Of a DNA stretch of 64,000 nucleotides, positions 5,060-45,372 are shown in pieces. Origin of the DNA: Sminthopsis crassicaudata (Eukaryota); the NCBI RefSeq assembly GCF_048593235.1, contig NC_133620.1:444755261-444819260 (forward strand). The letters are read 5' to 3'. The number at the start of each line of letters is the position of its first letter. Positions within the stretch are counted from its first letter, which is position 1. The notes under the pieces were generated by a model. That model was not told the DNA's origin, did no database searches, and saw only the letters and a list, made by a program, of their open reading frames with translations. The translations under genes were made by a program, and so were the position numbers.

Positions 5060-5373
5060 TTTATTCCAAAATCTTTATGCTGCAGATATTCATGGAATCC
5101 AGCAGGTGACTCAAAAGACCCTAAGGAAGAGAGGCCAGGATGCTACTAGAGTTTCCCATGGGGAACAGTTGATTTCCAGAAGTGCAAATAGCAAAAACAA
5201 ATACCCAAAGTGGATACCAAATAAATTACATAAATTAAGTCTCACAGAGAAGAATGAATTAAAATAGGAGAGAACATCTCAGGAAGGCTGGAGTGTGGAG
5301 AGAATGCCTCTAACTGGGGAATTTCTCAGCTTGGTCCATTTTCCTAAGATTCTTTGTCCTTTCTCCCAGGCCC
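5060..5373 (-). promoter_or_regulatory. Copy 1 3'UTR with AU-rich element, stem-loop and poly(A) signal
   Basis: AATAAA at 5065-5060; two ATTTA pentamers at ~5220-5240; hairpin at 5153-5165. Equivalent AATAAA signals at 10861, 15693, 21618, 29308, 35740 and 45066 for copies 2-7. Confidence 0.7.
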
Positions 5374-6529
5374 TCAGTTCAGCTCCAGGTCTTCCACGTA
5401 GCTCTGCACCCAGGCATCGGTGGGATTGGCACACACCTGCAGGCCCCTTTTGGTCAGGAACCTGGGGAAGAAGAGGAAGAGAGATTAGAGATCATGGAAG
5501 GAGAAGTCTTTCCTTCTATTCCCTCCATGTCCAGCACTGACCACGTCCTGAATATCTCTGTACAGCCTTAGGGGACAATCTTTACTTCTAGCAATATATT
5601 TCAGATCCAACTGAGTCAGGTTCTTTCTAAAGACCTGTGCAGTGGGGAATCTCTAAGGAAGTTTCCTCTTGGCATAAAAAACTTGTTGCATCAACTGATG
5701 CAACCCAAAATTTCCAGAGAACCCAACCTTGGCCAGAGACCATGTGGGGGACTACTTTTCCTTGTCACCAGGAGTCACCCAGGTGACCTGGTTCATCCTT
5801 TTGGCCAAGTAGCCCAATGACTTAATTTCCATTTTCCATTCTCTCTTCCTGTATCCCCTCAAGAACTTCCCTGGATAGATACTCACACCACAGCTGGCTG
5901 GGCACACAGGCTGCTGGTCTCATAATAGTCTGTCACAAATTTTCTCTGGATCTGTTGATTGATGTAGGAGAAGCAGCAGGAGGTGGGAGGGTCAGAGCCC
6001 ACTGGAAAGAAAGGGGAGGCAGGAGATTAGTGAGGTCATGATCATACCTTACAATACTTAGCTGCTGACTCCATCCCAGCACACACTCTGTATTAGAGAC
6101 AAGGCCTCCCTGCTATCCTCCAACATCAGGTGTGATTCTCACTGTGCCTGGAAGAGAATCAGAAGAGCGGCTCCCATGCTCACTGTGTAGTGTGGGAGCT
6201 AGAAAGGATCTCACAGAAATACTCAGACAATTCGTGCCCTTTTTGCCCCCTTGCCCTATCTCCATCTAAGACTGAATAAGCAAATAATGTCAAGGGCATG
6301 TTAATACCTTCAAGTCCAAGACATATAAATCCTACTTGATCTTACTCTCCCCTTCCAGGACTCCTCCTTCTCAAGTTAGGATGATTCCTGTGGTTAGAGC
6401 AAGGATCTATCCAGCCCATGACCTCAGCCTGAGCACAGAGCAGGAGGAAGCTCACTTACTTGGTGCAGAAGATGCCAGAGAGCTGAAGGCCACGATGAGG
6501 ATGGAGAGGGCAGCCACAGAGACCTTCAT
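5374..6529 (-). CDS. CCL4: CCL4-like (MIP-1beta family) CC chemokine, copy 1, intact, 90 aa
   Basis: Exons 6529-6460 (70 nt), 6001-5887 (115 nt), 5461-5374 (88 nt), with GT..AG splice sites. Translation [90 protein letters not shown]. The mature part is collinear with human CCL4 (APMGSDPPTACC...DLELN). Paralog, not necessarily the 1:1 ortholog. Confidence 0.95.
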
Positions 6530-6616
6530 GATCCTGAGAGGAGAGAGGAGCTGATGGATCGGGGCACAGGCTGAGAGATTCTGGAGAGCTGTTCTCTGTC
6601 TCATGCTTGGACCCTC

Positions 6617-6870
6617 TTTTTATAGGGGCATCTGGGAGATCCCAGAAAGAAAGAACAGAACAGAAACAGAAATTCCAATGGAGAAGTGATGTCGTGGTAG
6701 GAGATGGAAACTAAAACTGAATCCAGGAAATGTAAGGCTGCTGTCAAAGACTGAGGATCTCACCCCGGGACAGCTTCACTGTGGGGGAAATAGGAGGGGG
6801 GATGAAGAGGGAAAATATCTGCCTGTGGTGGGTGGCAAGGGTGCTAAGGGGGAAGTGGTGAACTTGTGAT
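6617..6870 (-). promoter_or_regulatory. Copy 1 proximal promoter
   Basis: TATAAAAA at 6624-6617; kB-like site variant TGGAATTTCT at 6677-6668; CRE-like variant; TGTGGT and GGGGAAGT motifs at ~6826-6860. Confidence 0.7.
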
Positions 6871-9643
6871 AGCAGCAGAGACAGACGAAACCTATGCAAA
6901 AACAAATAGGAAAGAGCGTTTTGTTGACCCAGAACATGAAAGAATATTCAATCTGACCTTCATACTGTTTTGGTATCATAACTGCCTAGATTTTACCATT
7001 GTAGTTTTAGTTACATGGATAATTCTTTTTCAACACTATTATGTTCCAGAAAAAAAAAAAAGTCTTGTTCCAGAGAGAAGTGACTTGTCCAAGATGACAC
7101 TAGTAGTTAGAAACAGATCCTGGATATATTTCCAGATCTGCTGACTCCACATTTTTGTATTTATAGATAATATCCTATAGGAAGAAACCAACATTATTCC
7201 TTCAAGGGCACTCAGGGAGAATTCTGGTGAAAATCGTGATCTCGACCCAGTCAATGAAATGAGGATTCCATCCCTCTGTCTGCTTTGTTGCATTTGCTTC
7301 AAATTTGTATCACTTTGGCAGTTTAAGGATACAAATTTTATATCACATAAAGGATACACAAGATTATGACACTGATTATCTCACAGTAACCTTATAAAGC
7401 AGGCAGAAATGATATTCTCATCTTTTTAGGAGACTTGAGGTCAGAAATAAGAAGACTGGACTCCTAATCTGATCGAGACTTATCAGTTGTATGATCCTTT
7501 ACCTCACAGGGCTCCCGGTCAACATTTTAATTAAATAATTTGTAAATTAATCGCTCTATATCAAGTTTTGCTGGATGGTTTCTTAAAATTTTAATAACCA
7601 GGAAGTGAAATGTTCAGGACTCAACCTTAGGACTTCTGATTTCAGACAGGATTTGACAAAATTAAACAGTATACTGCCATGGGAGAAGAGGCAATGTACA
7701 TATGAAATAATGACTAGAATTATGGGGCAGTTTTAAGTACATAACAATCATAGATATCAGTAGATGCATTTTATCCAATAAAAATAGAATTTATGTTAAA
7801 GAAGAGAAAAAGTGTAAGGGGAAGATGGAGATGGCAGTGGATATGATACTCTTTAATGTGTTCAGAAGTGGTAGGGTAGATTAGACACTCTTCAAGTGTC
7901 CTGAAATTTGTTAAGATGCAACTTTTCTATCCTGAACTAGAGTCAACAGATCTGGGACCAGATACGGGATCTGCCTCTCACCACTGGAGTCACCAAATAG
8001 AACAAGCCCTTTCTCTGGGCCCCAGTGTTTTTTCTTGCATAAGGAGGGCTGTCCAAGACAACTAATGGTCCTTCAAATCCTAAGTCTACACTCCTAAGAC
8101 CCAGGCAGCTGTGATATCCAAGTGTATGAAGATCATGCTGCTTACTCATTCAAATCAAAAGCCACCCTCACTCTCCTTCCTAACTGGTTTTGCACTTGCT
8201 TCATCACTCTCTGCTGCCATCTCTAGTTTGTTACTTTCCCCCACAGCACCTTGTCCCACCACCACACACACGATTCTCCTCTCTCTGTCCACTCCACTCT
8301 ATCTCCCAGGATGAAATTACACTGAGGAGCCAAACCTCAGCCTTGCACAGCCTTACATTTCCTGGGCTCCTTTTTCAATTTCCAACTTCCACCATGACAC
8401 ATGTAGTTTTTTGTAGTATATGATGTGACATATTGGTCTAAGCTCATTTTTCTCTCTAGCTGCCTTCCAGACCCAACTGCCTGATTTCTTAGGGTTTGCT
8501 AAACACCCTGCATCCATCTTCACTTGCTTCTGTTTCTGAATGAAGTAACCAGAATCTGGAGAAGAACTAGCAAATGAGTGAAATATTTTCAATGAGAACA
8601 AATTCAAATGCCTCTCTCCCTGCAATAAATAGTCTTTCCAGCAGAAGTCTGAAGATGACGGGTGTTTCCCCCTTTTTCTGGGTAGGTGATAAATGACAAA
8701 TACCACATGAGACCAACATTTTGACCTATGATCATCACTTTCCTTTGAGTATATACTGTCTCTTATATATGAAGACTTCTTTGAGGCAAATGACAGCAAT
8801 ACAAAACTAAGAAAAAGAAAGGAAAGAGCAATAATGAAAATTAAGAGGAGAAAAGGAATTTTGGGAAGGGGAGAAAAACAAGGGAAATGATTTACTATGG
8901 TGATAAACTCAACACATTCCTAAAAACACCAGCTGTATAGAGGTCACAGATTCACATACCCTCCTCTTCTCTGTTCTTCATATGTTAAAATGTTTATATT
9001 TTTTGATGTTTTGTTATTCAGAATAAAAATTAATTCATTAATAATATGTGAGAGTCATGACAACTTGAGAGACATTCTGACAAAAATATTCATATTACTT
9101 TATTCTGGTGAATGGATGAGTTTTCAGAACATAACCTTGACTTCAATTAGACTTGGACTGCAATTATTTTCTAGGTTCAGGGCTTTCTCTTCCTCCCTAT
9201 GCTGAGAGTCATGAGTCACTCTCCATTTTTTTCCTCAGTGACCTACTACCCAAACTGAGTCACATAGGACATAGAGAGAGCCAAGGGAGAACAGAGATCC
9301 AATATGGGAATGCCACAAGAGTTTATCTTAAAAAGACAGAGGATCAAAAATTAAGTGCTGCAGTAAAGCTATAGCAACATCTTATTTAGATTTTTAGTAG
9401 AACACTGGAGCTCTGGGAGAGGAAGGAAAGAGAGAAGGGAAGAAGGTATCAGTACACACTCCTGACCCAAGAAAAAAGAAGAGGAATCCACCCTGAGCTT
9501 TAGCATTCCCCTTTGTCTACAGAGAGAAAAAGAACTTCTTTTTCCTTGAATTTTAGAGAAACAAGGCTCTCGCTTACATGCAATTGAGCTCAGATTTTAT
9601 GAGTGCCCTGTCCTTTGTGCAGAAATGATTTGGTCCAATGACC

Positions 9644-10290
9644 CCCTCCTCTAGATGGCAAGTAGTCCAGCATATATTATATATGTTAAAGCCAATATAT
9701 GTAAACATATTTGTACAATTATCTTGCTGAAAAAGAAAGATCATATCAAAAAGGAAAGAAAATGAATAAGAAAACAAAATGCAAATCAATAACAACCAAA
9801 ATAATGAGAACATTATGTTGTGATCCCCTCAGTACCCACAATCCTCTCTGGGTGTAGATGGCTCTCTTCCTCACAAGATCATTGAAACTGCCCTTAATCA
9901 TCTCATTGTTACAGAGTCATGTCTAGCAGAATTGATCATCATAGAGTATTATTGCCGTGTACAGTGATCTCCTGGTTCTGTTCATTTCACTTAACCTCAG
10001 TTCTTTAAGTCTCTTAGGCCTCTCTGAAATCTCCCTACTGATCATTTCTTATAGAGCAATAATATTCCATAACATTCATGTACTATAACTTATTCAGCCA
10101 TTCTCCAATTGATGGGCGTTTACTCAAATTCCAGTTGCTAGCCACTACAAAAAGAGCTGCCACAAACATTTTAGTACCTACAGGTCGCTTTCGCTTCTTT
10201 AAGATCTCATTAGGATACAAGCCCAGTAGAAACACTGCTGGGTCAAAGGGTATACACAGTTTGATAATTTTTTGAGCATAGTTCCAAACT
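9644..10290 (-). mobile_element. L1 fragment (ORF2 end and 3'UTR, older subfamily)
   Basis: Similar to the antisense L1 at 27900-28270; no TSD seen. Confidence 0.8.
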
Positions 10291-11180
10291 GACAGCTAGA
10301 AATCTTAAGAAGTTTTTCCTGTCAGGCCAAATTTAGATCCTAACAAATCACATCCTTTGCCTTTGTTTCTATCCATGAGTCCTAGAGACTCATCTCAATT
10401 TTTCCAATACTTGAAAACTTCCAATACTTGAAAGCAGAAATCATGGCTCTTCTCTTTTCCCCACTGACCGTCCCTAGTTCCTTCTAATCATCCTTTTTTG
10501 ATTCTAGGCACCTGACATCCTTGATTGCTTCCTATAGACAATGTCCAGCTATCTAATGTTCCTCTGAAACTGTGGTTACCAAAGCAGACTAAAGACTCCC
10601 TGAGTGGTCTCATGAGATCAGAGCAATGGCCATATTGCCTCTCTGTTCCTGAAAGCTTACTTCACAGTAGGGATCAGTCTGGGATTTCGGGAGTCAACCT
10701 GTAAGATGGCAGTACATTCAACTCCCAGAGCTATTGCAGAACTCTGGTTGTCCAAGGATGCTACACCAATCTTATGTAAAAAGAGCAAAACCCCTTCACC
10801 TGAACCCTCATCCCCAAATGACATTAAGACTACACCAAAGAGATATGGTTTTGAAAACTTTTTATTCTGAAATCTTCATACTAGAAATGTTCATAGAATG
10901 GAGCAGGGGATCCAAAAGTCTCTCAGGAAGAGAAGCCAGGATGATAATAGAGGGTCTCATGGGGACCAGTTGTCTTCCAGAAATGGAACAATAGAACTAA
11001 TAAATACCGAAAGTCAACACCAAATAAATTCCATAAATTAAGTCTCACAGAGAAGAATGAATTATAATGAGGAAGGTCATCTCAAAAAAACTGGACTTTG
11101 GGGAGAATGCATCTGACTGGGAAAATCCTCAGCTCGGTCCATTTCCCACAAAGATCCCTTGTTTCAGGTCTCTGAGCCCC

Positions 11181-12480: not shown

Positions 12481-12565
12481 GATCCTGAGAGGAGAGAGGA
12501 GCTGGTGGATCAGGGCACAGGCTGAGAGTCTAGAGATCTGTTCTCTGTCTCATGCGTGGACCCTC

Positions 12566-13921: not shown

Positions 13922-16012
13922 GAAATGGGGATCACAAGCCAGTCAATGTTGTGTAATGCTTCTAATTTTCATCAATTTGACAGTTTAAGGATACAAATTT
14001 TATATCACTTAAAAATTACAAAAGATGATGACACTGATTATTTCATATCATCTTCACAGTAACCTTATAAACAGGCAGAATTGGGCTTCTTATGTTTCAT
14101 CTATTTAGGAGACTTCACCTAGAGTGGGCAGAAGATTGAAGTTAAGAACATTTGAGCCCTGATCCCATGACACTTATTAGCTCTGTGATCTTTTACCACA
14201 TATTGCCCCCAGCCAGCATTCTAATCAGATCATTTGTAGACTAGTTGCTCTATAATCATCAATTCTTGAAGGACGGCTTGTTCAAATTTTTATAACCAGG
14301 TAGTGTTATGTTCAGGACTCAACCTTAGGACTTCTGACTTCAAACAGAGTTTGACAAAATTTAATAGTAGACTGTCATGGGGAAAGAGACAATATCAAAG
14401 TGGATCTCTTGGGTGGAGAGTACATATGAAACAGTGACTGGAATTATGGGGCAATTTTAAGCACAGAGCTGATATCATAGATATCAGCAGATGCTATCTT
14501 ATCCAATAAAAATAGAATTCATGTTAAAGAAGAGAAAACAAGGTATGAGTGGAAGATGGAGATGGTGTGAATATAATGGTACTCTTTAATGTGTTCAGAA
14601 GTAGTCGGGGGGAGAGGAAGCTCCTTCAATTGTCCTGAAATGTGTTTAAAATGAAACTTGCCTATCTTGAACTGGAATCAGCAGATCTAGGACCAGAAAT
14701 AGGACCTGCCTCTCACTATTGACATCACCACATGGAACAAGCCCCTTTCTCTGGGCCACAGTGTTTTTTCTTCCATAAGGAAGGTATTGTCCGAGACAAG
14801 TAGATCCTAAGTCTATACTCCTAAAACCCAGGCAGCTGTGATATCCAAGTGTATGAAGATCATGCTGCTTACTCATTCAAATCAAAAGCCACCCTCACTC
14901 TCCTTCCTAACTGGTTTGGCACTTGCTTCATCACTCTCTGCTGCCATCTCTAGTTTGTTACTTCCCCCACAGCACCTTGTCCCACCACCACACATGCAAT
15001 TCTCCTCTCTCTGTCCACTCCACTCTATCTCCCATGAGGAAACTACACTGAGGAGCCAAACCTCAGCCCTTGCACAGCCTTACATTTCCTGGGCTCCTTT
15101 TTCCGTTTCCAACTTCCACCATGACACGTGTAGTTTTTTGTAGCATATGATGTGACATATTGGTCTAAGTTCAGTTTCTCTCTGGCTGCCTTCCAGACCC
15201 AACTGCCTGATTTCTTAGGGTTTGCTAAACACCCTGCATCCCTCTTCACTTGCTTCTGTTTCTGAATGAAGTAACCAGAATCTGGAGAAGAACTAGCAAA
15301 TGAGTGAAATATTTTCAATGAGAACAAATTCAAATAACTCTCTCCCTGCAATAAGTAGTCTTTCCAGCAGAAGGCTGAAGATGAAGGGTGTTTCCCCCTT
15401 TTTCTGGGTAGGTGATAGATGACAAATACCACATGAGACAGACATTTTGACCTATGATCATCACTTTCCTTTGATTATACAATCCCTTACATAGGAAGAC
15501 ACCTTTGAAGCAACTGACGGTAAAGCAAAATTAAGAGATGACAGTACATTCAACTCACAAAACTATTGTGGAACTTTGGTTGTCCAATAATGCTACACCA
15601 ATCATACATGATAAGAATAGAACCCCCTTCCCTGAATCCCTTAACCCCAAATAACATTGAATCCACAGCAAAAAGATAAAGCTTTAGAAAATTTTATTCT
15701 CAAATTTTTATCCTACAGATGTTCGTGGAATCAAGCATTCAAGGATTCTAATTAGTAGCAGGTAAGCTGCCAAGGGAGGTCCCCAGGGAGAAAAGCTATA
15801 TTCCAGAAATGGAACAATAGTACTAGAAAATAACCAACGGTGCCACCAAATAATTTACATAAATTAAGTCTCATAGAGAAGAATGAATTATAATGAGGGA
15901 GAGCATCTCAAAAATAACTGGACTTTGAGGAGAATGCATTTGATTGGGGAAATCCTCAGCTTGGTCCATTTCCCGCAAAGATCCCTTTTTTCAGGCCTCT
16001 GAGCCCCTCAGT

Positions 16013-17318
16013 TCAGCTCAGGTATTTCATGTAGCTCTGCACCCAGGCATCTGTGGGATTGGCGCACACCTGCCGGCCCCTTTTGGTCAGGAACCTGGAG
16101 AGGGAGGAGAAGAGACATTAGAGATCGTGGAAGAAGAGGTGTATCTTTCTGATCCCTCTATGTCTAGCACTGACCACTTCCTACACATCTCTGCAGGTTC
16201 AGAAGGGATAATCCCCTTCTCTAGCAATATCTCTCAGAGCCTTCTGAGTCAATCCCATTCTCTCTAGAGGCTTGTCCAATGGGAAGTGTCTCAGGAAGCC
16301 CCTTTTTGAAATAAAATTCTGTAGCATCAGCTGAGTAAATAGCTCCATGGAGAACCCAACCTTACCCAGAGACAACCTGGGGGACTTCTTTTCCTTCACA
16401 CCAGACATCACCTGGGTCACCTGATTCATCTCTTTGACCAAGGAGCCCAATGGTCCCATTTCTTCTTTCCACCCTCTCCCTGCATCCCCTTGGGATTTCA
16501 GTAGATAGATACTCACACCACAGCTGGCTGGGAACACAGGCTGCTCGTCTCATAATAGTCTGTCACAATTTTTCTCTGGATCTGTTGGCTGACATAGGAG
16601 AAGCAGCAGGAGGTGGGAGGGTTAGAGCCCACTGGAAAGAGGAGAAGGGAGGCAGGAGATTAGTGAGATCACATATTCACACTTTCCCTTCCTTAGCTGC
16701 AGACTCCATCCCAGAGACCCTCTCTGTACTAGGCACACAGGGGATGCAGACTCTCATGTCTCCCTTCCCCGGTTCCCTCCAGTAGCAGGTGTGATTCTCA
16801 CTGTGCCTGGAGGAGAATCAAAGAGCGGCTCCCATGCTCACTGTGTAATTTCAAAATGTGTACATTTTGAAAAGGAAAAAAGGTTCTGTGGGAGCTAGAA
16901 AGAATCTCACTGGTCTGTCCAGACAATTCCTGCCTTTGGCAAGAAAGCCATTTGCTAGGAACCATGTGAGTAATTAGTGCCAGAGCCAGAATGAGAACTC
17001 ATCCAGAGACAAAACTCCATCTAGTGCCTTTTTTGCTCCTTATCTTATCTCCAACTAACATGTATCAAGCAAATACTGTCAAGGGCATGTTAATACTTTC
17101 AAGTCTAAGGCGTCTAATTCCTCCCCTTCCCTTTCAGGACTTTTCCTTGTCAATTAGGATGATCCCTATGGTTAGAGCAAGGATCTATTCAGCCCACAAC
17201 CTCCCCCTGGGCACAGTCACAAAGGGCAGGAGGAAGCTCACTTACTTGGTGCAGAGGATGCCAAAGAGCTGACGGCCATGACCATGAGGATGGAGAGGGC
17301 AGCCACAGAGACCTTCAT
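16013..17318 (-). CDS. CCL4: CCL4-like CC chemokine, copy 3; a 1-nt deletion shortens the C-terminus by 2 aa
   Basis: Exons 17318-17246 (73 nt), 16631-16517, 16094-16013. [89 protein letters not shown]. All four Cys are kept. The ancestral stop at 16008-16010 is now out of frame. Confidence 0.85.
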
Positions 17319-20915: not shown

Positions 20916-21922
20916 ATAGTTATCTACTCAAACAAGTGACTGAAAAAATCCCCACTATCACATTCTTTGTGGATAGTCACTTAACTTCTATTTACAAACC
21001 TAAATGAGAGAAGGATCTCACAACAGCTTAACACAGCCCATTTCACCATGGACAGCTATCAGTCTTAAGTTTTCCAAATGTCAGGCCCAATTTAGATCCT
21101 AACAAATCACACCCTTTGCCTCTGTTTCTATCCATGAGTCCTAGAGACTCATCTCAATTTTTCCAATACTTGAAAACTTCCAATAGTTGAAAGCAGAAAT
21201 CATGGCTCTTCTCTTTTCCCCACTGACCGTCCCTAGTTCCTTCTAATCATCCTTTTTTGATTCTAGGCACCTGACATCCTTGATTGCTTCCTATAGACAA
21301 TGTCCAGCTATCTAATGTTCCTCTGAAACTGTGGTTACCAAAGCAGACTAAAGACTTCCTGAGTGGTCTCATGAGCTCAGAGCAATGGCCATATTGCCTC
21401 TCTGTTCCTGAAAGCTTACTTCACAATAGGGATCCATCTGGGATTTGGGGAGTCAACCTGTAAGATGGCAGTACATTCAACTCCAGAGCTATTACAGAAC
21501 TCTGGTTGTCCAAGGATGCTACACCAATCTTATGTAAAAAGAGCAAAACCCCTTCTCCTGAACCCTCATCCCGAAATGACATTAAGACTACACCAAAGAG
21601 ATATGGTTTTGAAAACTTTTATTTTGAAATTTTCATGCTACATGAAATGGAGCAGGGGATCCAAAAGTCTCTCAGGAAGAGAAGCCAGGATGATAATAGA
21701 GAGTCCCATGGGGACCAGTTGTCTTCCAGAAATGGAACAATGGAACTAATAAATACCCAAAGTCAACACCAAATAAATTCCATAAATTAAGTCTCACAGA
21801 GAAGAATGGATTATCACAGGGGAGAAGGAAGGCTGAACTGCGGGGAGAATGTATCTGAGGAGGGAAATGCTCAGCTTGGTCCATTTCCCACAAAGATCCC
21901 TTGTTTCAGGCCTCTGAGCCCC

Positions 21923-23171
21923 TCAGTTCAGCTCCAGGTCTTCCACGTAGCTCTGCACCCAGGCATCAGAGGGATTGGCGCACACCTGCCGGCCCCTTTT
22001 GGTCAGGAACCTGAGGAGGGAGGGGAGGAGAGATTAGAGATCATGGAAGAAGAGGGGTTTCTTCCTATTCCCTCCACTTCCAGTACAGACCGATTCCTGA
22101 ACATCTCTGCAGGGAGAGAAGGGACAACCCTCATCTCTAGCAATATCTCTCAGACCTTTCTGATTTAATCCCATTCTCTCTAGAGGCTTGTCCACTGGAG
22201 GGTCTCTCAGGAAGCCCCTTGTTAAAATGAAATTCTGTAACATCAGCTGGGTATGTAGCTCCATGGAGAACCCAACCTTAGCCAGAGACAACCTGGGGGA
22301 CTTCTTTTCCTTCACACCAGACATCACCTGGGTCACCTGATTCATCTCTTTGACCAGGGAGCCCAATGGTCCCATTTCTTCTTTCCGCCCTCTCCCTGTA
22401 TCCCCTTGGGATTTCAGTAGATAGATACTCACACCACAGCTGGCTGGGAGCACCGGCTGCTCGTCTCATAATAGTCTGTCACAATTTTTCTCTGGATCTG
22501 TTGGCTGACATAGGAGAAGCAGCAGGAGGTGGGAGGGTCAGAGCCCACTGGAAAGAGGAGAAGGGAGGCAGGAGATTAGTGAGATCACATGTTCACACCT
22601 TCCCTTCCTTAGGGGCAGACTCCATCCCAGAGACCCTCTCTGTACTAGGCACACAGGGGATGTGTACTCTGATGTCTTCCTTGCTCTGCTTCCCTCCAGT
22701 AGCAGGTGTGATTCTCACTGTGCCTGGAGGAGAATCAAAGATCGGCTCCCATGCTCACTATGTACATTTTGAACAAAACAAATAGTGTGGGAGCTAGAAA
22801 GAATCGTACAGGTCTGCCCAGACAATTCCTGCCTTTGGCAAGAAAGCCGCTTTGAGTAATTAGTGGCAGAGCCAGAATGAGGACTTAGACACAGAACTCA
22901 ACCTAGTGCCTTTTTTACCCCCCTCTCCTATCTCCATCTAACATTTAACAAGCAAATACTTCAAGTCCAAAGCACATAAATCCTACCCTTCCCTTCCAGG
23001 ACTCCTCCTCAAATTAGGATGATCCCTGTGGTTAGAGCAAAGATCTATCTAGCCCATGACCTCCCCCTGGGCCCAGAGTCAGGAGGAAGCTCACTTACTT
23101 GGTGCAGAAGATGCCAGAGAGCTGAAGGCCATGACCAGGAGGATGGAGAGGGCAGCCACAGAGACCTTCAT
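21923..23171 (-). CDS. CCL4: CCL4-like CC chemokine, copy 4, intact
   Basis: Exons 23171-23099, 22547-22433, 22010-21923. [91 protein letters not shown]. Confidence 0.95.
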
Positions 23172-23258
23172 GATCCTGAGAGGAGAGAGGAGCTGGTGGA
23201 TCAGGGCACAGGCTGAGAGATTCTGGAGATCTGTTCTCTGTCTCATGCGTGGACCCTC

Positions 23259-23500
23259 TTTTTATAGGGGCACCTGGGAGATCCCAGAAAGAAAGCACAG
23301 AACAGAAATGGAAATTCCAGTGAAGTGATGTCATGGTAGGAGATAGAAACTAAAACTGAGCCCAGGAAAGGTTGCTGTCAAGGCCTGAGGTTCTCCCCCC
23401 AAGACAGCTTCACTGTGGGGGAAAGAGGAGGGGGAATGAAGAGGGAAGATGCCTGCATGTGGTGGGTGACAAGTTGCTAAGGGGGAAGTGGTGAACTTGT
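23259..23500 (-). promoter_or_regulatory. Copy 4 proximal promoter
   Basis: TATA 23266-23259; TGGAATTTCC at 23319-23310; TGACATCA at ~23327-23334. Confidence 0.7.
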
Positions 23501-28542: not shown

Positions 28543-29624
28543 TCTGCCAAGAAAATTCCAAAGGAGTTCACAAAGAGTTAGATATAAATGAAATGACAAA
28601 ACAGTCATCAACTCAAAAAAATTCCCACTATCACATTCTTTGGGATGTCACCTAGCTTCTGTTTACAAACCTACATAGGAGAGGGATCTCACAACAGCTT
28701 AACACAATCCATTTCACTATGAATAGCTATCAGTCTTAAGAAGTGTTTCCTAAAGTTGTACTCAATTTAGATTCTAACAAATCCCACTTTTTGCCCTTTG
28801 TTTCTATTTTTCATCCCTAGAGAGCACTCATGTCAACTTTTCCAGTACTTGAAAACTTCCCATACCTGAAAACAGAAATCATGATTTTTCTTTTTTCCCC
28901 CTGACTAACCCTAGTTCCTTCTTATCATCCTTTTGATTCTAGGCACCTGACATCCTTGATTGCTTCCTATAGACAATGTCCAGCTATCTAATGTTCCTCT
29001 GAAACTGTGGTTACCAAAACAGACCACAAGACTCCCTGAGTGGTCTCATGAGATCAGAGCAATGGGCATATTGCCTCTCTGTTCCTGAAAGTTTACTTCA
29101 CGGTAGGGATCAGTCTGGGATTTGGGGAGTCAACCTGCTGACTCAAAGTAAGATGGCAGTACATTCAACTCCCAGAGCTATTACAGAACTCTGGTTGTCC
29201 AATGATGCTACATCAGTCTTATATGACAAGAGCAGAACCTCTTCCCCTGAACTCCTCATCCCCAATGGACACTTAAATCACAGCAAAAAGATATGGTTTT
29301 GAAAACTTTTATTTTGAAATCTTCATATTAGAAATGTTAGTGGAATGAAGGAGGGGATCCAAAAGTCTCTCAGGAAGAGAAGCCAGGATAATAATAGAGG
29401 GTCTCATGGAGACCAGTTGTCTTCCAGAAATGGAACAATAGTACTAATAAATACACAAAGTCACCACCATATAAATTAAATAAGTCTCATAGAGAAGAAT
29501 GAATTATCATAGGGCAGATATTAACTCTGGAAGGCTGAACTATGGAGAGAATGCATCTGACTGGGGAAATCCTCAGTTCAGTCTATTTCCCACAAAGATC
29601 CCTTGTTTCAGGCCTCTGAGCCCC

Positions 29625-35000: not shown

Positions 35001-36079
35001 AAGACATAGTCATCTACTCAGAAAAGCAACTGAAAAAAATCCCCACAATTACATTCTTTGTGTATGGTCATCTAGCTTCTGTTTAAAGACTTGCATGGGA
35101 AAGAGATTTCACCAGAGCTTAGCAGAGTCCGTTTCACTATGGGTAGCTATCGGTCTTAGGAAGTTTTTCCTAATGTAAGACCCAATTTAGATGCTACCAA
35201 ATCCTACCCCTCAACTTTGTTTCTACCCTTGATCCCTAGAGAGCACTCATCTCAACTTTTCTAATACTTAAAAACTTCCCATATTTGAAAGCAGAAATCA
35301 TGGCTCTTCTCTTTTCCTCTCTGAGTATTCCTAGTTTCTTCAAATCATTCTCTTCTGATTCTAGGCACTTGATGTCCTTGGTTGCCTTCCTCTGGACAAT
35401 GTCTAGCTAACCAATATTCTTCCGAAACTGTGGGTACCAAAAGAGATCATAAGACTCCCTGGGTGGTCTTATCAGATCAGACAATGGGCATATTGCCTCT
35501 CTATTCCTGGAAGCATGCTTCCAACGGATCAGTCTGGGATTTGGGGAGTCAACCTGCTGACTCAAACTACACGACAGTACATTCAACATCAATTCATTAG
35601 TTCAACAGAACTAGTGCAGAACTTTGGTTGTCCAATAATGCTACGCCAATCTTACATGATAAGAATAGAACCCCTTTTCCTGAATCCCTTATCCCCAAAG
35701 AACATTGAATCCACAGCAAAAAATAAAGCTTTAGAACGTTTTATTCTCAAATTTTTGTCCAACAGATGTTCATGGAATCAAGCAAATGACCTAAGATTTC
35801 TAATTAATAGCAGCTAAGCTGCCAAGAGAGGTCCCCATGGGGGACAGTATGTTCCAGAAATGGAATAATAGTACTAACAATATATTAATAATAAAATGCT
35901 TGGTGGCAAAAATGCCATCAAATAGTATAAATTAAGTCTCATGGAGAAGAATGAATTATAATGAGGGAGAGCATCTCAAAAATACTGGACTTTGGGGAGA
36001 ATGCATCTGACTGGGGAATTCCTCAGCTCGGTCCATTTCCCACAAAGATCCCTTGTTTCAGGCCTCTGAGCCCCTCAGT

Positions 36080-37379
36080 TCAGCTCCAGGTCTTCACGTA
36101 GCTCTGCACCCAGGCATCTGTGGGATTGGCGCACACCTGCCGGCCCCTTTTGGTCAGGAACCTGGAGAGAAAGAGAAGGAGACATTAGAGATCGTGGAAG
36201 AAGAGGGGTTTCTTTCTGTTCCCTCCATGTCCAGCACTGACCGCTTCCTGCACATCTTTGCAGGGACAGAAGGGACAATCCTCATCTCTAGCAATATCTC
36301 TCAGACCCTTCCGAGTCAATCCCATTCTCTCTAGAGGCTTGTCCAAGGGAAGCCCCTCGTTGAAATAAAATTCCTGTAGCATCAGTTGATACTTCCCTTT
36401 GGAGAATTAGCTCCATAGATAGCCTAACCTTGGTCAGAGACAACCTGGGGAACTTCTTTTCCTTGTCACCAGGTTTCTCCTGGGTCACCTGATTCATCTC
36501 TTTGACCAAGGAGCCCAATGGTCCCATTTCTTCTTGCCACCCTCTCCCTGTATCCCCTTGGGATTTCAGTAGATAGATACTCACACCACAGCTGGCTGGG
36601 AACACAGGCTGCTCGTCTCATAATAGTCTGTCACAATTTTTCTTTGGATCTGTTGGATGACATAGGAGAAGCAGCAGGAGGTGGGAGTATTTAAGCTCAC
36701 TGGAAAGAGGAGAAGGGAGGCAGGAGATTAGTGAGATCACATGTTCACACCTTCCCTTCATTAGCTGCAGACTCCTTCCCAGAGACCCTCTCTGTACTAG
36801 GCCCACAGGGAATGCAGACTCTCATGTCTCCCTTATCCTGCTCCCCACCAGTACCAGGTGTGATTCTCACTGTACCTGAAGGAGAATCAGAAGAGCTATT
36901 CCCGTGCTCACTGTGTCTATTTTGGAAAAAAAAAATTAAGTAGTGTGGGAACTAGAGAGAATCTCATGGATCTATTCAAACAACTCCTGCCTTTGGCAAG
37001 AAAGCCACTTGTTAGAAATCATATGAGTAATTAGAGGCAGAATCAGAAGGAGAACTCAGCCAGACTCAGAACTCAACCTACTGCCCTTTTTGCTCCCCCC
37101 CCATCCTATTTCTATCTAAGATTTAACAAACAAATACTTTCAAGGGCATGTTAATACCTTCAAGTCCAAGGCATATCAATCCTACTTGATCTTACCCTTC
37201 CTTTTCAAGTCTCCTCCTTCTCTAGTTAGGATGATCCCTGTGGTTAGAGCAAGCATCTATCCAGCCCATGACCTCAGCCTGGGCACAGAGCAGGAGGAAG
37301 CTCACTTACTTGGTGCAGAGGATGCCAGACAGCTGAAGGCCACGATGAGGATGGAGAGGGCAGCCACAGAGACCTTCAT
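36080..37379 (-). CDS. CCL4: CCL4-like CC chemokine, copy 6; altered N-terminus and 1-nt deletion near the C-terminus
   Basis: Exons 37379-37310, 36699-36585, 36161-36080. [88 protein letters not shown]. The ancestral stop at 36075-36077 is out of frame. Confidence 0.85.
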
Positions 37380-37690: not shown

Positions 37691-38694
37691 GTAACAAAAA
37701 GATGACACATATGCAAAACTAAACTGGAAGGAGAGTTCCGTCGACTACCATTGACCCTAAGAAGGAATATTCAACATGGCCTTCAAACTGCTTTGATATC
37801 ATAACTGCTGAGTTCTTAGCATTACAGATTTAGAACTAGAAGGGTCTTTAATGGTCTAGTCCAATACTCTCAGAATCTAGAGAAAGAACTGTGGCCCAGA
37901 AGGAAGTAACTTATCCAAGATCACACTGGTAGTCAGAAAAAAAATCTGATATATTGTTTCCACATCTGTTAACTTCATACTCACTTTATATAAGAGCATG
38001 TCCATTTATACACATATACATATATACACAGATACATGTGTATATTCATGCTTATGTGGAGAATGGTCCATACCAAGGACACCTCCATGGTTCTTTAAAG
38101 GCACTCAGGATAATTTTTGCACAAATGGTACCTATAAAAGACCACTGGTCTTAGTCTATCCCTACATTTTTTTCTTATGTGATGATTTTAACTACTTACA
38201 TTTGTATAACACTTTAAAGACCCAAAAGATTTTGATACTAATTATTTTAAATCAGCTTCACAAGAACTCTATGAAACAGGCAGGCTTGTATTCTTATATC
38301 TTGCTTATTTATGAGACTGCTTCTAGGAGTAGATAGACTTCTAGGCTTGAAGTCAGGAAGATCTGGGTATAAGTTCCATTTTTGAAAATTATTAGCTGTG
38401 AGATCTGTAACCTCATACCAGCTTTTGTTAAATGCCATGTCCAAATTTTGACAACCAGAAAGTGGAAAAGGATTCAGCCTTTGACCTTCGGAGTTCAAGC
38501 AGGATTTGACAGAATTCTGGGGCACAACCCCATGAGACCCTCTGAGGAGGAGTGCAGGTTAGAATTGTGAAACACTTGTTAGTACACAACTTGTTCATGC
38601 TTTTTCGTCCAATGGAAATGAATTTCATATTAAAGAAGATAAAACAATATGTGGAGGGAAGATGGAGATGGGGGTGAAAGTAATGTTTCTATAT

Positions 38695-38775
38695 TAAGTT
38701 ATAATATATAATATAATATGTTATAATAGAATATAATGTTATAATATATAATATTATAATATAATATAGATATTA
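38695..38775. repeat. AT-only low-complexity tract
   Basis: Repeated tataatat-type units. Confidence 0.85.
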
Positions 38776-40829: not shown

Positions 40830-41600
40830 ATCCCACTTCCATATCACCAGTTGTTTCGTACATCTCTTCATCTGGAAGTCTTGTTAACACTCAGACCCAA
40901 TCTATTCCAAGCAGAGCTCATTTCTTTCCTTTAAACTCACTTCCCTTTCAGTTTTCTCTTTCCGTTAGAGCCCCATCATCCTTTGAGATTCATAGATTTG
41001 AAGCGGAGTCCTCCTCAATTCTTCACTCACTATTCCCAATCACTTTCTAAGACTTTTTCTTTTTTCTTTCACAATGCCGCCTGCACTGTCCCCCTTTCTC
41101 CTCTTAAATGACTACTTCTGTAGGCAAGGCTTTCATCATCTCTCATTTAGACTCTTAAATAGCGTTCTGGTTAGCCCTTTGTCTCTTCCAGGCTCTCATC
41201 TACTCCATCCATTCTCCACAGTTATGAAACTGATAATCCTCAAGCTTATGTCTGACCACAACCCTTACCTCCTCAAGAAGCTTCAGTGTTTCCTGTACCG
41301 TTTTATATTTCTTTTCTGCTATGCTGCTTTTTACAAGAAGTCCTTCCTGATTCTCCCAGTAATTAGTGTTTCTCCCCATCCTCTGTAATTACTTTGAATT
41401 GATTTTGTAAATAGATTTTAAATTTTACTTCTCTGGCTCTGTGGCGTTTCCTTCCATAATACTATATTCCACTGGACTACAAAGACCTTCTGGGTAGAGA
41501 TATTTTCATTTTCTGTCTCTGGGATCTCAGAACAATGCTTAGTTGTAACTGGGAGCACTTGGCTGTGCTGGCCATACACATTGACCTCAGTCAACTTTAA
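40830..41600. mobile_element. Degenerate L2-like fragments
   Basis: Pyrimidine-rich L2-type 3' motifs; similar remnants at ~52880-53230, ~57480-58060 and ~60440-60960. Confidence 0.45.
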
Positions 41601-42121
41601 TCTAAAGTTGCTTAAGAAACTACACACTAAGTACCCAAACTTAGAGTTATCATCTTTGGCCCCATAGAAGAGTTAAAAAAACAAAGCACCAACACTCTCC
41701 ATTTGTGGAGATAAGGTTTTTGGGGTGTAAAACATCACATAAACTACCAGAAACAATTGATGTGTGGTTTACTTTTGCTGCACTTTCTCCCCTTATTTTT
41801 AATATCATTATTGCAAGGAATGACTCACTGAATAAGAAGTATTCAGAAATAAATGATTTTTTAAAATGTGCTAACAAAAATTAAATTGTGAAAGGAGAAC
41901 AAGACACGTGCAGATACATCTTTTGAACTTCTCCATTTTTTCTGTCACAGTCAAGAGCCTCTCGTGTTCTCAGAGATACAAAGGGATTCTATCTATCACT
42001 CTGTAGTAAATATTCCAACCCGGCCTGGTGGTATTGAAATCATAGAAAAGTATAGACACTTCCTTGGATACTTCCTTGCTGTATGTACATGAGGAAATCC
42101 ATTGATTTTTCATAGTCTCTC

Positions 42122-42277
42122 TTTTTTTTTTTTTTTCTTTTTGCAAGGCAACTGAGGTTAAATGACTTTGCTAGGGTCACATAGCAAATAAGGATTAAGT
42201 GTCTGAAGTGGATTTGAACTCAGGTTCTCCTGATTTCAGGCTCAGTGTTCTATCCACCTGTGCCATCTAGCTGCCCC
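42122..42277 (-). mobile_element. Marsupial tRNA-derived SINE (WSINE/SINE1-like)
   Basis: Reverse complement of ggggcagctagatggcacaggtggatagaacactgagcctgaaatcaggagaacctgagttcaaatcc..., with a poly(T) tail. Confidence 0.85.
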
Positions 42278-44133
42278 AATCTCTGATAGTTTCAGTTTTC
42301 TCATCCTTCAAATAGGAATAATAATACTCCCACTATCTATTTCAAATGATTGTTGAGAGAACAGTCCTTTGGACACTTCAAATCCCCTTAAGAATGGAAG
42401 TTCTGGGCTAGAGGGTCAAAGTTGGGGAGCTACAAGGAATCTTTGCATGAAGCCCACTAAGAACTAATTTTCCTTCCCAATTCCCCTTTCAAAATTCCCT
42501 TGGGATTTCATCTTCCCAACAAAGCTGCGGTACAAGCAGTGTGGGGAGAATGGTAACACTGCCCATCCACAAACAGCACTAATAGAAAGCAACAATGAGT
42601 AATAAACATCCTTTGCCTCCCTAAAACTCTTCACAGTTTAAAAAACATGTTCTGTTGCCCCTATTGCTTTGTATCAGCCTCAGAACTGCCTTAAGGTACA
42701 ACCAAGAGAGATTTGAGTGACTTGCCCAAGATCGTGCAGTTAAGGCTTAGTAGAGACTAATTGAGAATACCAAAAAGGACTGGGTAGATTTCAGGAACTT
42801 ATGCATATACTAGTTTATGATCCTCACCACATTCTGGGGCATGATATGTTAATGGGTAATGTCATGACCATATGACAAATTAGGAAACTGAAACACAAAG
42901 AGGTGACAGAATTTTGTTTAAGGCTTTCTACTAACCCACAATCCCTCAGTTTCCTGTCTTCTATGGTAAAGATGTCCTTCAAGTTAGAGTTGGGAAAAAT
43001 TAAAATACATTTATAATTGATTTGTCCAAGGACTTTCAATTAGAATTTCTGACATCTCAGAGAGAACCAAAGGAATAATGGAGAAGAAGAGGTATAGAAA
43101 AGTGAAAGAAGTCAATTGTGACAAGTTGGGTCCACCAGTGGAGAAGAGAGGGCATAGAACCAGGTTGTGAAAATGACCTTAATGTTTTATGGGAGGAACA
43201 GAAAGGAGGCCAGAATCATTTTTTTTTAAAATAGAATGAGTGAAGGGCAATAAAGTGTTAAAAAAAAAACAGAAAGATAGGAAAGAGATAGGCTACAGAG
43301 GACGTGAAAAGTCAAAAAGATATTTTTTTATTTAATTCTGGAGGTGATAGGGAGCCACTGGAGTATACTGAATACAGAATGACATGGTCAGAATTCTTTA
43401 TGAAGAATCACTTTGACAGCTGAATGAAGAATGAAATGGAATGAGGACAAATGTGAGGAAAGGAGATCATCCAACAGAATATCATTACTTTAATCAAGAT
43501 AGGGCTAAGATGGATTTTCTTAATTTATCGTTAAATATTACAAAAATATAGGCACAATGAAAATATTTGAGTTAACATTTTTCTTTTATTCTGAAGCTAG
43601 GAAGTGATTGAACTAAGATAAGATTTCAAGTCTTGTATTTTGACATCTAAATTGGCCAATTTACCATAAGTTTCTCATTCATTGAAAAACATGATTTTTA
43701 GATTATTGTTAAATACACTAATTTTTTTCCAAAAGCTAAGTCAGTATGTGACTTTCCTACAGTCATGCCAGTAGTGAAGTCATGATTTGAAACAGCAAAT
43801 TAAGCATTTTATCTCCTGTCACACTTTTTAAAATAATCTCCATTTTTCTTAAATCTTTCCTGGTTCTACTTCTCTCTCTTCCATTTTTCCTAGTGGTTCC
43901 TTGGTACAACTCCTAAGAAAGAATTGTTTTTGGCCCATATCCTACATCACAGAATTTGATAGTTACAGAATTTGAGTTTTTGGAAAGGACTATAGTTAAT
44001 CCGTTACTAAAAACAAACCCCACTATCCCATTCTTTGGAAATGCTCACCCCACTTTTCTTTAAAGATCTCCAGGGGAAGGGAAACTCCCTACAGCTTGAT
44101 GTCATCCATTCTAGTTTTAACAGTCAAAATTGT

Positions 44134-44481
44134 TTTTTTTTAATAATAGTTGAAATATTTTGAAATATATGCAAAGATAGTTTTCAACATTCGCCCTTGC
44201 AATAGGTTCCAAAATTTTCTCCCTCTCTTCTTCCCACCCTCTTCCTTAGACAGCAATTAATCCAATATATGTTAAATACATGCAACTCTTCCATATATAT
44301 TTCCACATTTATAATGCTTCACAAGAAAAATCAGATTAAAAAGGAAAAAAATTAGAAAGAAAACAAAAGAAAGCAAGCAATAACAAAAAAGATAAAAATA
44401 AAAATACTATTTTGTGATCTACATTCAGTCCCCACAGTCTTCTTTCTGGATGTAGATGGCTCTCTCTATCACAAGTCTATT
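44134..44481 (-). mobile_element. L1 3' end
   Basis: L1 3'UTR motifs, poly(T) start, flanking direct repeat aaaattg. Confidence 0.75.
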
Positions 44482-45372
44482 AAAATTGGACAGCCATAAA
44501 TGTATAGAAGTTTTTCCCAACAGCAAGACTAAACTTAATCTCCTCACAAATATCATCCATTGATCCTGATTCTGTCTTTTGAATGAATCCCATGAAGACA
44601 AATCTATATTCTTCCAAAGGATGGACCTTCCTATATTTAAAGATAGAAATTATATCTAACCTGGGTCTTCTCTTCTCCCATAAATATCCCAAGTTCCTTC
44701 AACTCACCCTCTTACAACTTTCAGCCCTTGATTGTCTACTCTTGCTCTTCTCCAGCTTCCCAGTGTTCTTAGTAAATTATGGTTCCCAAAACTGACCAAA
44801 ATAGTGTGAGTGTAGTCTGCTCAGACCATACAAGAATGAGACTACTGCTTCTCTATTTCTGGAAGTTTGTTTTTTAACACAGAAGATCTTATTTTTGGCT
44901 TCCCTCTCATCCTACTGACTCAAAATGAGATGGTGGTCCACTGAATCTCTAGAAATTTTATAGAAACAGTGTCCAATAACACCACATCCATATGCTATAA
45001 AAATAGCATTCTCTTTTCCCTTGAGAAAATAGAAACCATGGTCAAAATATATGGATTTTAAAATGTTTATTGACAGGCATTCACAGAATCCAGAAGGTAG
45101 CCCCAACACTCTAAAGAGTGGAAGTCTGGCTGCTACTAGAAGTCCCCATGGGAGACAAGCGCCCTCCAGAAATACAAATGTTACCAATAAATATCCAAAT
45201 ATGTCACCAAATAATTTACATAATAAGTTAAATCTCATTGGCAAAAAAAAAAATTATAATGGGAAAGTCAATCTCAGGAAAACTTCAGTCTTGAAAGATC
45301 TCATCCAACTGCAGAGTTTCTTGATTTGGATCATTTTTCTTTAGGATTCATTTTCCTAGGTTTCTGAGCCTC

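Follow-up and report, generated by a model that had tools for sequence, protein, structure and literature searches.

A conserved CAU hairpin in the 3'UTRs of tandem CCL4-like genes of the fat-tailed dunnart, a probable decay element of the Roquin/Regnase-1 type

CCL4 is a major inflammatory chemokine, the mRNA of which needs to be switched off fast. In the window, i.e., the whole 64,000-nucleotide stretch of fat-tailed dunnart (Sminthopsis crassicaudata) DNA that was analysed, exon matches give seven tandem CCL4-like genes, all on the minus strand and all with the ATG and the splice sites intact. The question that this locus raises is whether a short hairpin recurring downstream of their stop codons is a selected RNA structure and, if so, what would read it. 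An earlier note had taken the hairpin to be a conserved decay element of the type recognised by Roquin and Regnase-1. Conservation among therians, covariation, the fit to the known motifs and a precedent in mouse Ccl4 support this proposal, and we regard it as probable (roughly 0.7) that the hairpin is a CCL4 3'UTR stem-loop of the constitutive-decay-element (CDE) type, conserved across therian mammals and recognised by Roquin-1/2 and/or Regnase-1.

It is noted that the minus strand is the mRNA sense for the hairpins, the positions of which are collected together with those of the 3'UTRs in Table 1. In the seven copies the hairpin is located 210–245 nt past the stop codon and 70–86 nt ahead of AATAAA, which is invariant across the alignment of the dunnart copies. 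Since the hairpin lies between the stop codon and the invariant AATAAA in every dunnart copy and in every species aligned, the hairpins are inside the expected 3'UTRs. The coding sequence of copy 3 has a 1-nt deletion, which shifts its stop codon 4 nt upstream, and copy 7 clusters in the 3'UTR tree with a single-copy lineage that is present across marsupials. AU-rich motifs are present 30–80 nt upstream of the hairpin. A second small hairpin, UUCCA-UUUC-UGGAA, is possible in copies 2–6, 8 nt upstream of the first, and the other species aligned do not retain it.

Table 1. Stem-loops and 3'UTRs of the seven dunnart CCL4-like copies (positions in the window; each 3'UTR runs from after the stop codon to AATAAA).
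Feature	Positions	Strand	Sequence or AATAAA	Remarks
Copy 1 stem-loop	5152–5166	-	G-TTCCC-CAU-GGGAA-A	5 Watson-Crick pairs, outer G.A unpaired
Copy 2 stem-loop	10953–10967	-	GGUCCC-CAU-GAGACC	C.A mismatch at pair 5 (second from the loop in the upper stem)
Copy 3 degenerate stem-loop	15779–15793	-	UUUCUC-CCU-GGGGAC (DNA TTTCTC-CCT-GGGGAC)	ungapped alignment
Copy 4 stem-loop	21702–21716	-	GGUCCC-CAU-GGGACU	5 Watson-Crick pairs and outer G.U
Copy 5 stem-loop	29400–29414	-	GGUCUC-CAU-GAGACC	6 Watson-Crick pairs, pair 5 compensated to U-A
Copy 6 stem-loop	35831–35845	-	GUCCCC-CAU-GGGGAC	6 Watson-Crick pairs
Copy 7 stem-loop	45142–45156	-	GUCUCC-CAU-GGGGAC	6 pairs, one U.G
Copy 1 3'UTR	5060–5373	-	AATAAA 5060–5065	exon 3 match ends at 5377; AATAAA invariant in alignment
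Copy 2 3'UTR	10861–11180	-	AATAAA 10861–10866	exon match and alignment
Copy 3 3'UTR	15693–16010	-	AATAAA 15693–15698	upper bound approximate; alignment
Copy 4 3'UTR	21618–21922	-	AATAAA 21618–21623	exon match and alignment
Copy 5 3'UTR	29308–29624	-	AATAAA 29308–29313	exon match and alignment
Copy 6 3'UTR	35740–36086	-	AATAAA 35740–35745	upper bound approximate; alignment
Copy 7 3'UTR	45066–45372	-	AATAAA 45066–45071	exon match and alignment

Each dunnart copy has a stem of 5–6 bp and a triloop, and the six hairpins that the earlier note had listed (copies 1, 2, 4, 5, 6 and 7) were all found at the positions given there in the minus-strand reading. Its claim that copy 3 has lost a loop base turned out to be wrong, because the seven copies align gap-free across the element. 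What stands is that the element is weakened in copy 3, by substitution: the loop A is changed to C, giving a loop that departs from the pyrimidine-purine-pyrimidine pattern, two of the pairs are U.G and the outer pair is broken. The folding of the copies is graded, with hairpin pair probabilities of 0.98–1.00 in copy 6, 0.94–0.96 in copy 5, 0.73–0.98 in copy 4 (where the MFE fold of the entire 3'UTR contains the hairpin), 0.24–0.37 in copy 1 (full 3'UTR folded), 0.25 in copy 7, at most 0.04 in copy 2, which is predicted not to fold, and 0.00 in copy 3. Note also that pair 5 of copy 2 stands midway towards the U-A pair that copy 5 has there.

Within the array, both sides of pairs 2, 3 and 5 of the six stem pairs change and 39 of the 42 cells (92.9%) are paired, so the statement of the earlier note that stem bases change in pairs holds; the loop is CAU in six of the seven copies, copy 3 being the exception. 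With the seven copies, the covariation score is 0.548, as compared with 0.326 in shuffles, and is reached by 4 of 500 shuffles, and sliding the partner column by one lowers the pairing to 64%. Among the 8,090 six-bp positions scanned (loops of 3–7, both strands) in the 7-copy alignment of 2.3-kb units, the CCL4 hairpin in mRNA sense stands alone in combining a pairing of 90% or more with three double-sided pairs. When neutral evolution is simulated along the paralog tree, the P per ancestral hairpin ranges from about 1e-3 for 6 bp to 1.5e-4 for the 5-bp core, and a rough correction for the 60–170 chance hairpins expected per unit brings this to about 0.03–0.06. Thus, the evidence from the window by itself is no more than suggestive of a selected hairpin, and the corrected significance is a point in favour of a neutral DNA palindrome, where the pairing would have arisen by chance or by arm-copying template-switch mutations with no RNA function. 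Template switching yields one-step compensated changes in inverted repeats; moreover, where the pyrimidines of a stem are 5' and its purines 3', about half of the transitions yield G.U and seem to preserve the pair.

The earlier note had called for an alignment of CCL4 3'UTRs across therians, with a covariation analysis and RNAalifold. In the alignment made here the hairpin is present at the homologous 3'UTR position in seven other marsupial genera (being broken in the single aligned bilby copy) and in three eutherians. The form of copy 6, GTCCCC-CAT-GGGGAC, is the one that most of the marsupials have, as seen in Gracilinanus, Trichosurus, Dromiciops and Vombatus, and it recurs in the bat Molossus; the form of copy 1, TTCCC-CAT-GGGAA, is that of a second Trichosurus copy. 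The hairpin is GTCCCT-CAT-GGGGGT in Antechinus, TCCCC-CAT-GGGGG in Notamacropus, GTCTCC-CAT-GGAGAT in Mus pahari and ATCCCC-CGT-GGGGAT in the badger Meles, with additional compensated pairs in the latter two species. The loop is CAU in 14 of the 15 non-dunnart sequences aligned, with CAC in one broken Antechinus copy and CGU in Meles. Its position 3 is U throughout save in that Antechinus copy, and the A to G of the badger, which still gives a pyrimidine-purine-pyrimidine loop, is the only loop change within an otherwise fully paired hairpin. From several apparently intact paralogs (the bilby copy, two Antechinus copies and a tammar copy) the hairpin is gone, and it is therefore dispensable for some members of the CCL4 family.

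The covariation was determined with 22 sequences (7 dunnart and 15 others), the decayed paralogs included. Among them 85.6% of the cells are paired; the covariation score is matched by 0 of 500 shuffles and the pair count by 10 of 500. Under neutral simulation along the 3'UTR tree, the joint P for the 22 sequences is 2e-4 to 5e-4 whatever the rate, and for the 15 non-dunnart sequences alone P is 0.004–0.016. With the 18 non-decayed sequences, RNAalifold predicts exactly the CCL4 hairpin and nothing else. Moreover, the hairpin predates the marsupial/placental split and five of its six stem pairs have changed on both sides in a compensatory way, which is strong comparative evidence that it works as a structure.

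If the palindrome were neutral, it would hardly be expected to persist in both eutherians and marsupials when the tree amounts to 4.0 substitutions per site, with a P for the observed pairing at the neutral rate of 0.0013 (22 sequences) or 0.007 (non-dunnart). Nor would the hairpin be expected to be the best-conserved 15-column window of the 3'UTR between eutherians and marsupials (0.756, versus a mean of 0.407 and 0.720 for the window of the poly(A) signal). Palindrome repair would also not explain the loop, which changes far more slowly than the flanks, with 1.0 parsimony steps per column in the loop, 3.4 in the stem and 3.7 in the flanks. A neutral palindrome is thus very improbable, and the cross-species data settle that the hairpin is more than chance. 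Since the stem columns change at about the rate of the flanks and the pairing persists, selection acts on the pairing of the stem and not on its sequence; in the loop, the sequence itself is selected.

The same data bear on two other explanations. The first is that the conserved unit is an element of double-stranded DNA, e.g., a palindromic or NF-kappaB-like site downstream of the gene, rather than an RNA. The core CCATGG is indeed a DNA palindrome, the 3' arm with its flank in Trichosurus, GGGGACCCCC, is kappaB-like, and the wobble count gives no strand preference (10 G.U versus 9 A.C cells). However, the kappaB-like flank is not retained in the dunnart, in the other marsupials or in the eutherians. 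A protein site would hold its sequence, whereas the arms change at the flank rate, and together, and swaps from G-C to U-A and from C-G to U-A in both arms are unexpected under half-site recognition; we thus give this explanation very little weight. The second is a linear single-stranded RNA motif, i.e., a C-run for a poly(C)-binding protein or a G-run, with the pairing as a by-product. It accords with the C-rich 5' arm and the G-rich 3' arm of most species, but where the 5' arm has gone from C to U, the 3' arm has gone from G to A, and this occurred independently in copy 5, in Mus pahari and in the copy 1 type, and the stem columns lack sequence conservation, so that this explanation is also hardly likely.

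We now return to the decay element. The anatomy of the element is a stem of 5–6 bp, with the three loop-proximal pairs having a 5' pyrimidine and a 3' purine, a C-G closing pair and the triloop CAU (CGU in the badger). The original CDE definition of Leppek 2013, as presented in PMC6294493, consists of a YRY triloop and three Y-R pairs with a 3' purine stack. All the dunnart copies except copy 3 have such a triloop, and the upper stem of the hairpin fits as well, copies 1, 4 and 6 having CCC/GGG, copy 5 CUC/GAG and copy 7 UCC/GGG, where one pair is U.G; the C.A mismatch of copy 2 falls in this part of the stem. The relaxed definition asks for a stem of 6–8 bp without G.U and a YRN triloop (PMC6294493). 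Copies 5 and 6 and the marsupial/bat form fully agree with it, and copies 2 and 3 fall outside; of the others, copy 1 stops at 5 bp, copy 4 adds an outer G.U to 5 Watson-Crick pairs, and the stem of copy 7 includes an internal U.G. For high-confidence CDEs, the same source uses evolutionary conservation, a folding probability above 5% and U at loop position 3, which is favoured in conserved CDEs (PMC6294493). The hairpin shows therian conservation and U at this position, and the pair probability is 0.24–1.0 in copies 1, 4, 5, 6 and 7; copies 2 and 3 (at most 0.04) are below 5%.

Roquin recognises shape and the YRY triloop, and the sites of Regnase-1 are YRY triloops on stems of 3–7 nt (PMC5603727), so that on its sequence the hairpin, with a YRY loop and a short stem in a 3'UTR, is also a candidate Regnase-1 site. 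In mouse, a YRY stem-loop of the Ccl4 3'UTR, possibly a different hairpin from the dunnart type, caused reporter repression on expression of Regnase-1, and macrophages with Regnase-1 knocked out showed increased Ccl4 (PMC11197792, 2021). The conservation of the hairpin is consistent with this single published reporter result. The stem-loop search of that study used a stem of more than 5 bp, a loop of 3–6 nt and YRY in the loop (PMC11197792), and the orthologous 7-bp CAU hairpin of Mus pahari falls within these bounds. The Mus pahari 3'UTR also has a second candidate stem-loop, with a pentaloop. Rfam covariance models at the gathering score matched no decay-element family in the whole window. 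All that Rfam matched there was a U6 snRNA, at 47086–47187.

The covariation and the conservation reveal a structure and not its reader, and a selected RNA hairpin could be read by a protein other than Roquin or Regnase-1, or could have another role, for instance in controlling translation, in localising the mRNA, or in positioning the nearby AU-rich elements or the poly(A) site. In line with this, LPS relieves a translational repression under which Ccl4 mRNA is kept in resting macrophages (PMC4063670), and CCL4 is absent from the compared supplementary lists of predicted human Roquin CDEs. By contrast, the definitions of the CDE and of Regnase-1 sites are matched in loop class, in the Y-R pairs of the upper stem, in stem length and in the location in a 3'UTR, a YRY stem-loop of mouse Ccl4 responds to Regnase-1 (PMC11197792), and the loop change in the badger preserves the pyrimidine-purine-pyrimidine class. 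Another reader or role thus seems unlikely, though less so than the three explanations above. The CCL4 hairpin is a real element, and it belongs to the already known CDE/Regnase-1 class rather than being a new kind of element; the identity of the binding protein and the effect on decay are what we infer from it.

Based on the CDE/Regnase-1 reading, the ROQ domain of Roquin-1/2, Regnase-1 or both would recognise the folded hairpin in the mature CCL4 mRNA by its shape. Roquin would lead to deadenylation and decapping of the CCL4 mRNA, Regnase-1 would cleave the mRNA under translation, and the hairpin together with the upstream AU-rich motifs would make the mRNA short-lived. In reporters of the UCP3 CDE, the activity was reduced by having only 5 Watson-Crick pairs, as in copies 1 and 4, or an internal G.U, as in copy 7 (PMC6294493). 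Full activity of the element is predicted for copies 4, 5 and 6, a weaker element for copies 1 and 7, and a largely inactive one for copies 2 and 3. Note also that one and the same pair is C-G in copy 4, C.A in copy 2 and U-A in copy 5, giving natural stem-break and stem-rescue variants. It is conceivable, and we put it forward only tentatively, that the dunnart array is a natural mutate-and-rescue series, the paralogs of which have diverged in post-transcriptional control, with a strong hairpin retained in copies 4, 5 and 6, a weaker hairpin in copies 1 and 7, and escape from Roquin/Regnase-1 of copies 2 (by C.A) and 3 (by CCU). If this is true, the tandem CCL4 genes would differ in mRNA half-life, instead of or besides protein sequence, and the losses of the hairpin in the bilby, Antechinus and tammar paralog lineages would be the same process repeated.

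Finally, we compare the hairpin with known systems. Like the Roquin CDE of TNF, it is a single 3'UTR hairpin with a pyrimidine-purine-pyrimidine triloop having U at position 3, a C-G closing pair, three upper Y-R pairs, a 3' purine stack and a stem of 5–6 bp, it is conserved mammal-wide, and it is located in an inflammatory mRNA downstream of AU-rich motifs. It differs in the upper stem, which is CCC/GGG in CCL4 and UUC/GAA in TNF, and in that the stem of some dunnart copies is limited to 5 Watson-Crick pairs or includes an internal G.U. With the target stem-loops of Regnase-1 (ZC3H12A) it shares the YRY loop, the short stem and the location in the 3'UTR of an LPS-induced chemokine, whereas, unlike the mouse Ccl4 stem-loop, the dunnart copies are those of marsupial paralogs. 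The possible second hairpin in copies 2–6 recalls tandem or composite decay elements, i.e., the UCP3 tandem CDE and the ADE plus CDE-like element of Ox40; in the dunnart, however, the second hairpin has a tetraloop and is species-limited, and the conserved unit is the single hairpin.

The seven CCL4-like chemokine genes of the window, recognized by evenly spaced exon 2 and exon 3 peptides, stand in tandem on the minus strand only, with the ATG and the canonical AG/GT splice sites intact in all seven. Copies 3 and 6 have independent 1-nt deletions in the final codons of exon 3, their proteins ending in YMKYLS and YVKTWS, respectively, in place of the YVEDLELN found elsewhere.

All six hairpins that the earlier note had described were found on the minus strand exactly where it placed them. 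Between the stop codon and the hairpin are 210-245 nt, and a further 70-86 nt separate it from an AATAAA unchanged in the seven copies, which places it within the expected 3'UTR. The 15-nt block (two 6-nt stem arms and a 3-nt loop) aligns without gaps in every copy. It is noted that this alignment corrects the claim that copy 3 has lost a loop base: the change is an A-to-C substitution in the loop, with copy 3 reading UUUCUC-CCU-GGGGAC, where two pairs are U.G and the outer pair is broken. AUUUA pentamers are present 30-80 nt 5' of each hairpin in the mRNA sense, with UAUUUAU in several copies, and AUUUA or UAUUUAU also stands at this distance upstream of the hairpin in nearly all of the marsupial and eutherian CCL4 3'UTRs sampled. 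With RNAalifold on the seven copies a second possible hairpin is predicted 8 nt to the 5' side of the CAU hairpin. It occupies one position in copies 2-6 and is disrupted in copies 1 and 7 by a G.G; it was dropped as a part of the element because it is unconserved outside dunnart copies 2-6.

Positions and sequences of the features (window positions unless a locus of another species is named; hairpins written arm-loop-arm)
Feature	Sequence	Position	Strand	Remark
CCL3-like exon 2		63658-63774	+	strand opposite to CCL4 array; remaining gene extends beyond window
U6 spliceosomal RNA, full-length match		47086-47187	-	Rfam RF00026, 52.9 bits, E 1.9e-10; ~500 nt upstream of copy 7 first exon
Copy 6 exon 2 start	SLNTPT (peptide)	36686-36697	-	GSDPPT or GSNPPT in other copies
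Copy 3, 1-nt deletion		~16010-16030	-	
Copy 6, 1-nt deletion		~36086-36100	-	
AUUUA pentamers, example		21745-21790	-	
Second possible hairpin, copy 4	UUCCA-UUUC-UGGAA	21724-21737	-	
Hairpin-less bilby paralog		L001:11464-11508		
Hairpin-less Antechinus paralog		L002:11488-11531		
Hairpin-less Antechinus paralog		L002:18348-18392		
Hairpin-less tammar paralog		L007:20763-20806		
Tammar orthologue		L007:11553-11575		12-nt insertion right behind hairpin (G run and repeat of AGTAGCAG), by which outer stem pair becomes G.G
Gracilinanus, Trichosurus, Dromiciops, Vombatus, Molossus (bat)	GTCCCC-CAT-GGGGAC			
Trichosurus, second copy	TTCCC-CAT-GGGAA			form identical to dunnart copy 1
Antechinus	GTCCCT-CAT-GGGGGT			
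Notamacropus (tammar)	TCCCC-CAT-GGGGG			
Meles (badger)	ATCCCC-CGT-GGGGAT			
Mus pahari	GTCTCC-CAT-GGAGAT			

Among the seven paralogs, 39 of the 42 cells of the stem are paired. With the pairs numbered 1 to 6 from the outermost, four copies carry U-A and three carry G-C at pair 2. At pair 3, U-A occurs in four copies, C-G in two and U.G in the remaining one. Four copies carry C-G at pair 5, where copy 5 has U-A, copy 3 has U.G and copy 2 has the mismatch C.A. The observed covariation score of 0.548 compares with 0.326 after shuffling and is attained in 4 of 500 shuffles; shifting the partner column by one lowers the pairing to 64%. Because the hairpin had been chosen by eye in the earlier note, the aligned 2.3-kb units were scanned as a whole and on both strands, which gave 8,090 gap-free positions for a six-bp stem with a loop of 3-7 nt. 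No position other than that of the hairpin, read in the mRNA sense, combines pairing of at least 90% with three pairs changed on both sides; the antisense reading of the hairpin has fewer paired cells (36 of 42). In neutral simulations on the IQ-TREE tree of the units, the probability per ancestral hairpin does not exceed about 1e-3 when the 6-bp stem is taken, or 1.5e-4 when only its 5-bp core is; the pairing odds give an estimated 60-170 chance hairpins per unit, so that the corrected significance from the window alone is about 0.03-0.06. The covariation within the window alone is thus at most suggestive of a selected hairpin.

For the comparison with other species, the exon 2 peptide, used singly as a protein query with the exons unspliced, led through chemokine representatives and a bilby protein to a 91-residue bilby paralog, and from there to named CCL4 or CCL4-like proteins of many marsupials and eutherians, of which ten loci were fetched; the homologues of the array genes include CCL4-like proteins of Sminthopsis crassicaudata itself. 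The Sarcophilus protein P0123 has no gene on record. Locus L011 was searched with a 13-nt hairpin consensus from the marsupials, a string that does not occur in 21400-23300 of the window. In the other species the homologous place is 190-228 nt past the stop codon. In the badger the outer G-C pair has become A-U and the loop CGU, still pyrimidine-purine-pyrimidine, and in Mus pahari pair 4 has changed from C-G to U-A. In one wombat copy a single pair inside the stem is mismatched. The elephant CCL3-like gene, whose 3'UTR is the sole CCL3-like one sampled, lacks the element, and this 3'UTR is shorter. The hairpin is lost in four divergent paralogs, which have several substitutions each and seem otherwise intact, with sister copies retaining it; read from these alignments, hairpin loss is lineage-specific and took more than one event. 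In the dunnart, the predicted pair probabilities within the full 3'UTR are 0.73-1.0 for copies 4, 5 and 6, about 0.24-0.37 for copies 1 and 7, at most 0.04 for copy 2 and 0 for copy 3. Since copy 6 has a perfect hairpin despite its coding deletion, hairpin decay is not simply tied to coding damage.

With the 22 sequences aligned, the four decayed ones included, 85.6% of the cells are paired, five of the six pairs have changed on both sides, and the covariation score is attained by none of 500 shuffles. Given a 3'UTR tree length of 4.0 substitutions per site, simulation at the neutral rate gives P = 0.0013 for the observed pairing, and P = 2e-4 to 5e-4, whatever the rate, for this pairing taken jointly with the five pairs changed on both sides. 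The 15 non-dunnart sequences, which are independent of the origin of the hypothesis, yield P = 0.007 when pairing alone is considered and a joint P of 0.004-0.016. Run on the full set of 22 sequences, which includes four decayed paralogs and a gap column, RNAalifold predicts no structure; from the 18 that remain when the decayed paralogs are omitted, an omission decided post hoc with the data already seen, it predicts the dunnart-type hairpin and nothing more. The compensatory change that the earlier note had proposed is supported across therians by shuffling and simulation, with RNAalifold agreeing on 18 sequences and not on 22.

The hairpin is also the 15-column window most conserved between eutherians and marsupials (0.756 versus a mean of 0.407; 0.720 for the window of the poly(A) signal). 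It is very improbable that the element is a neutral DNA palindrome or a product of template switching, which would leave unexplained both its retention across the eutherian-marsupial split and the slow change of its loop. The parsimony steps per column are 3.4 in the stem, 3.7 in the flanks and 1.0 in the loop; a stem near the flank rate with a slow loop argues that it is the pairing of the stem and the sequence of the loop that are under selection. A site read by a protein at the DNA level does not account for arms that evolve at the flank rate yet jointly, and we give it hardly any credence; nor does a linear C-run or G-run motif in the RNA, which is just as improbable. Note that the wobble-pair test of strand, with 10 G.U and 9 A.C cells, is uninformative. 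An NF-kappaB-like site in the 3' arm and flank was set aside, being present in one or two species only.

Judged from sequence, the CCL4 hairpin is a genuine RNA stem-loop under selection and belongs to the Roquin/Regnase-1 class proposed in the earlier note, with these proteins as its likeliest candidate readers. In the original consensus of the Roquin constitutive decay element (CDE), a YRY triloop caps three Y-R pairs that have a 3' purine stack; the relaxed one calls for a YRN loop on a stem of 6-8 bp, with conserved CDEs favouring U at loop position 3 (PMC6294493). Roquin recognizes chiefly the shape and the YRY triloop, and Regnase-1 sites have a YRY triloop on a stem of 3-7 nt (PMC5603727). 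With its CAU loop, C-G closing pair, CCC/GGG beside the loop and 5-6 bp, the CCL4 hairpin fits the original CDE and the Regnase-1 motif definitions; the relaxed CDE consensus is fully matched by copies 5 and 6 and by the form common to marsupials and the bat. The Rfam search of the window gave no match to a decay-element family, and CCL4 is absent from the accessible portion of the supplementary lists of the Roquin CDE prediction paper. Another protein than Roquin or Regnase-1 may read the hairpin.

A 2021 smartSHAPE study of mouse macrophages (PMC11197792) predicts YRY stem-loops in 3'UTRs, reports that seven, that of Ccl4 among them, repress a reporter in a Regnase-1-dependent manner, and finds Ccl4 to be up in Regnase-1 knockout macrophages. 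In the Mus pahari Ccl4 3'UTR two hairpins satisfy the criteria of that study, namely the conserved triloop and a pentaloop closer to the stop codon. The dunnart hairpin is orthologous to an element that has probably been published already for mouse Ccl4. In the TNF 3'UTR, an AU-rich element is followed by a stem-loop, and the CCL4 3'UTR is alike in having AU-rich motifs and then a stem-loop. The kind of element is already known, and in the CCL4 hairpin its natural covariation is unusually clear.
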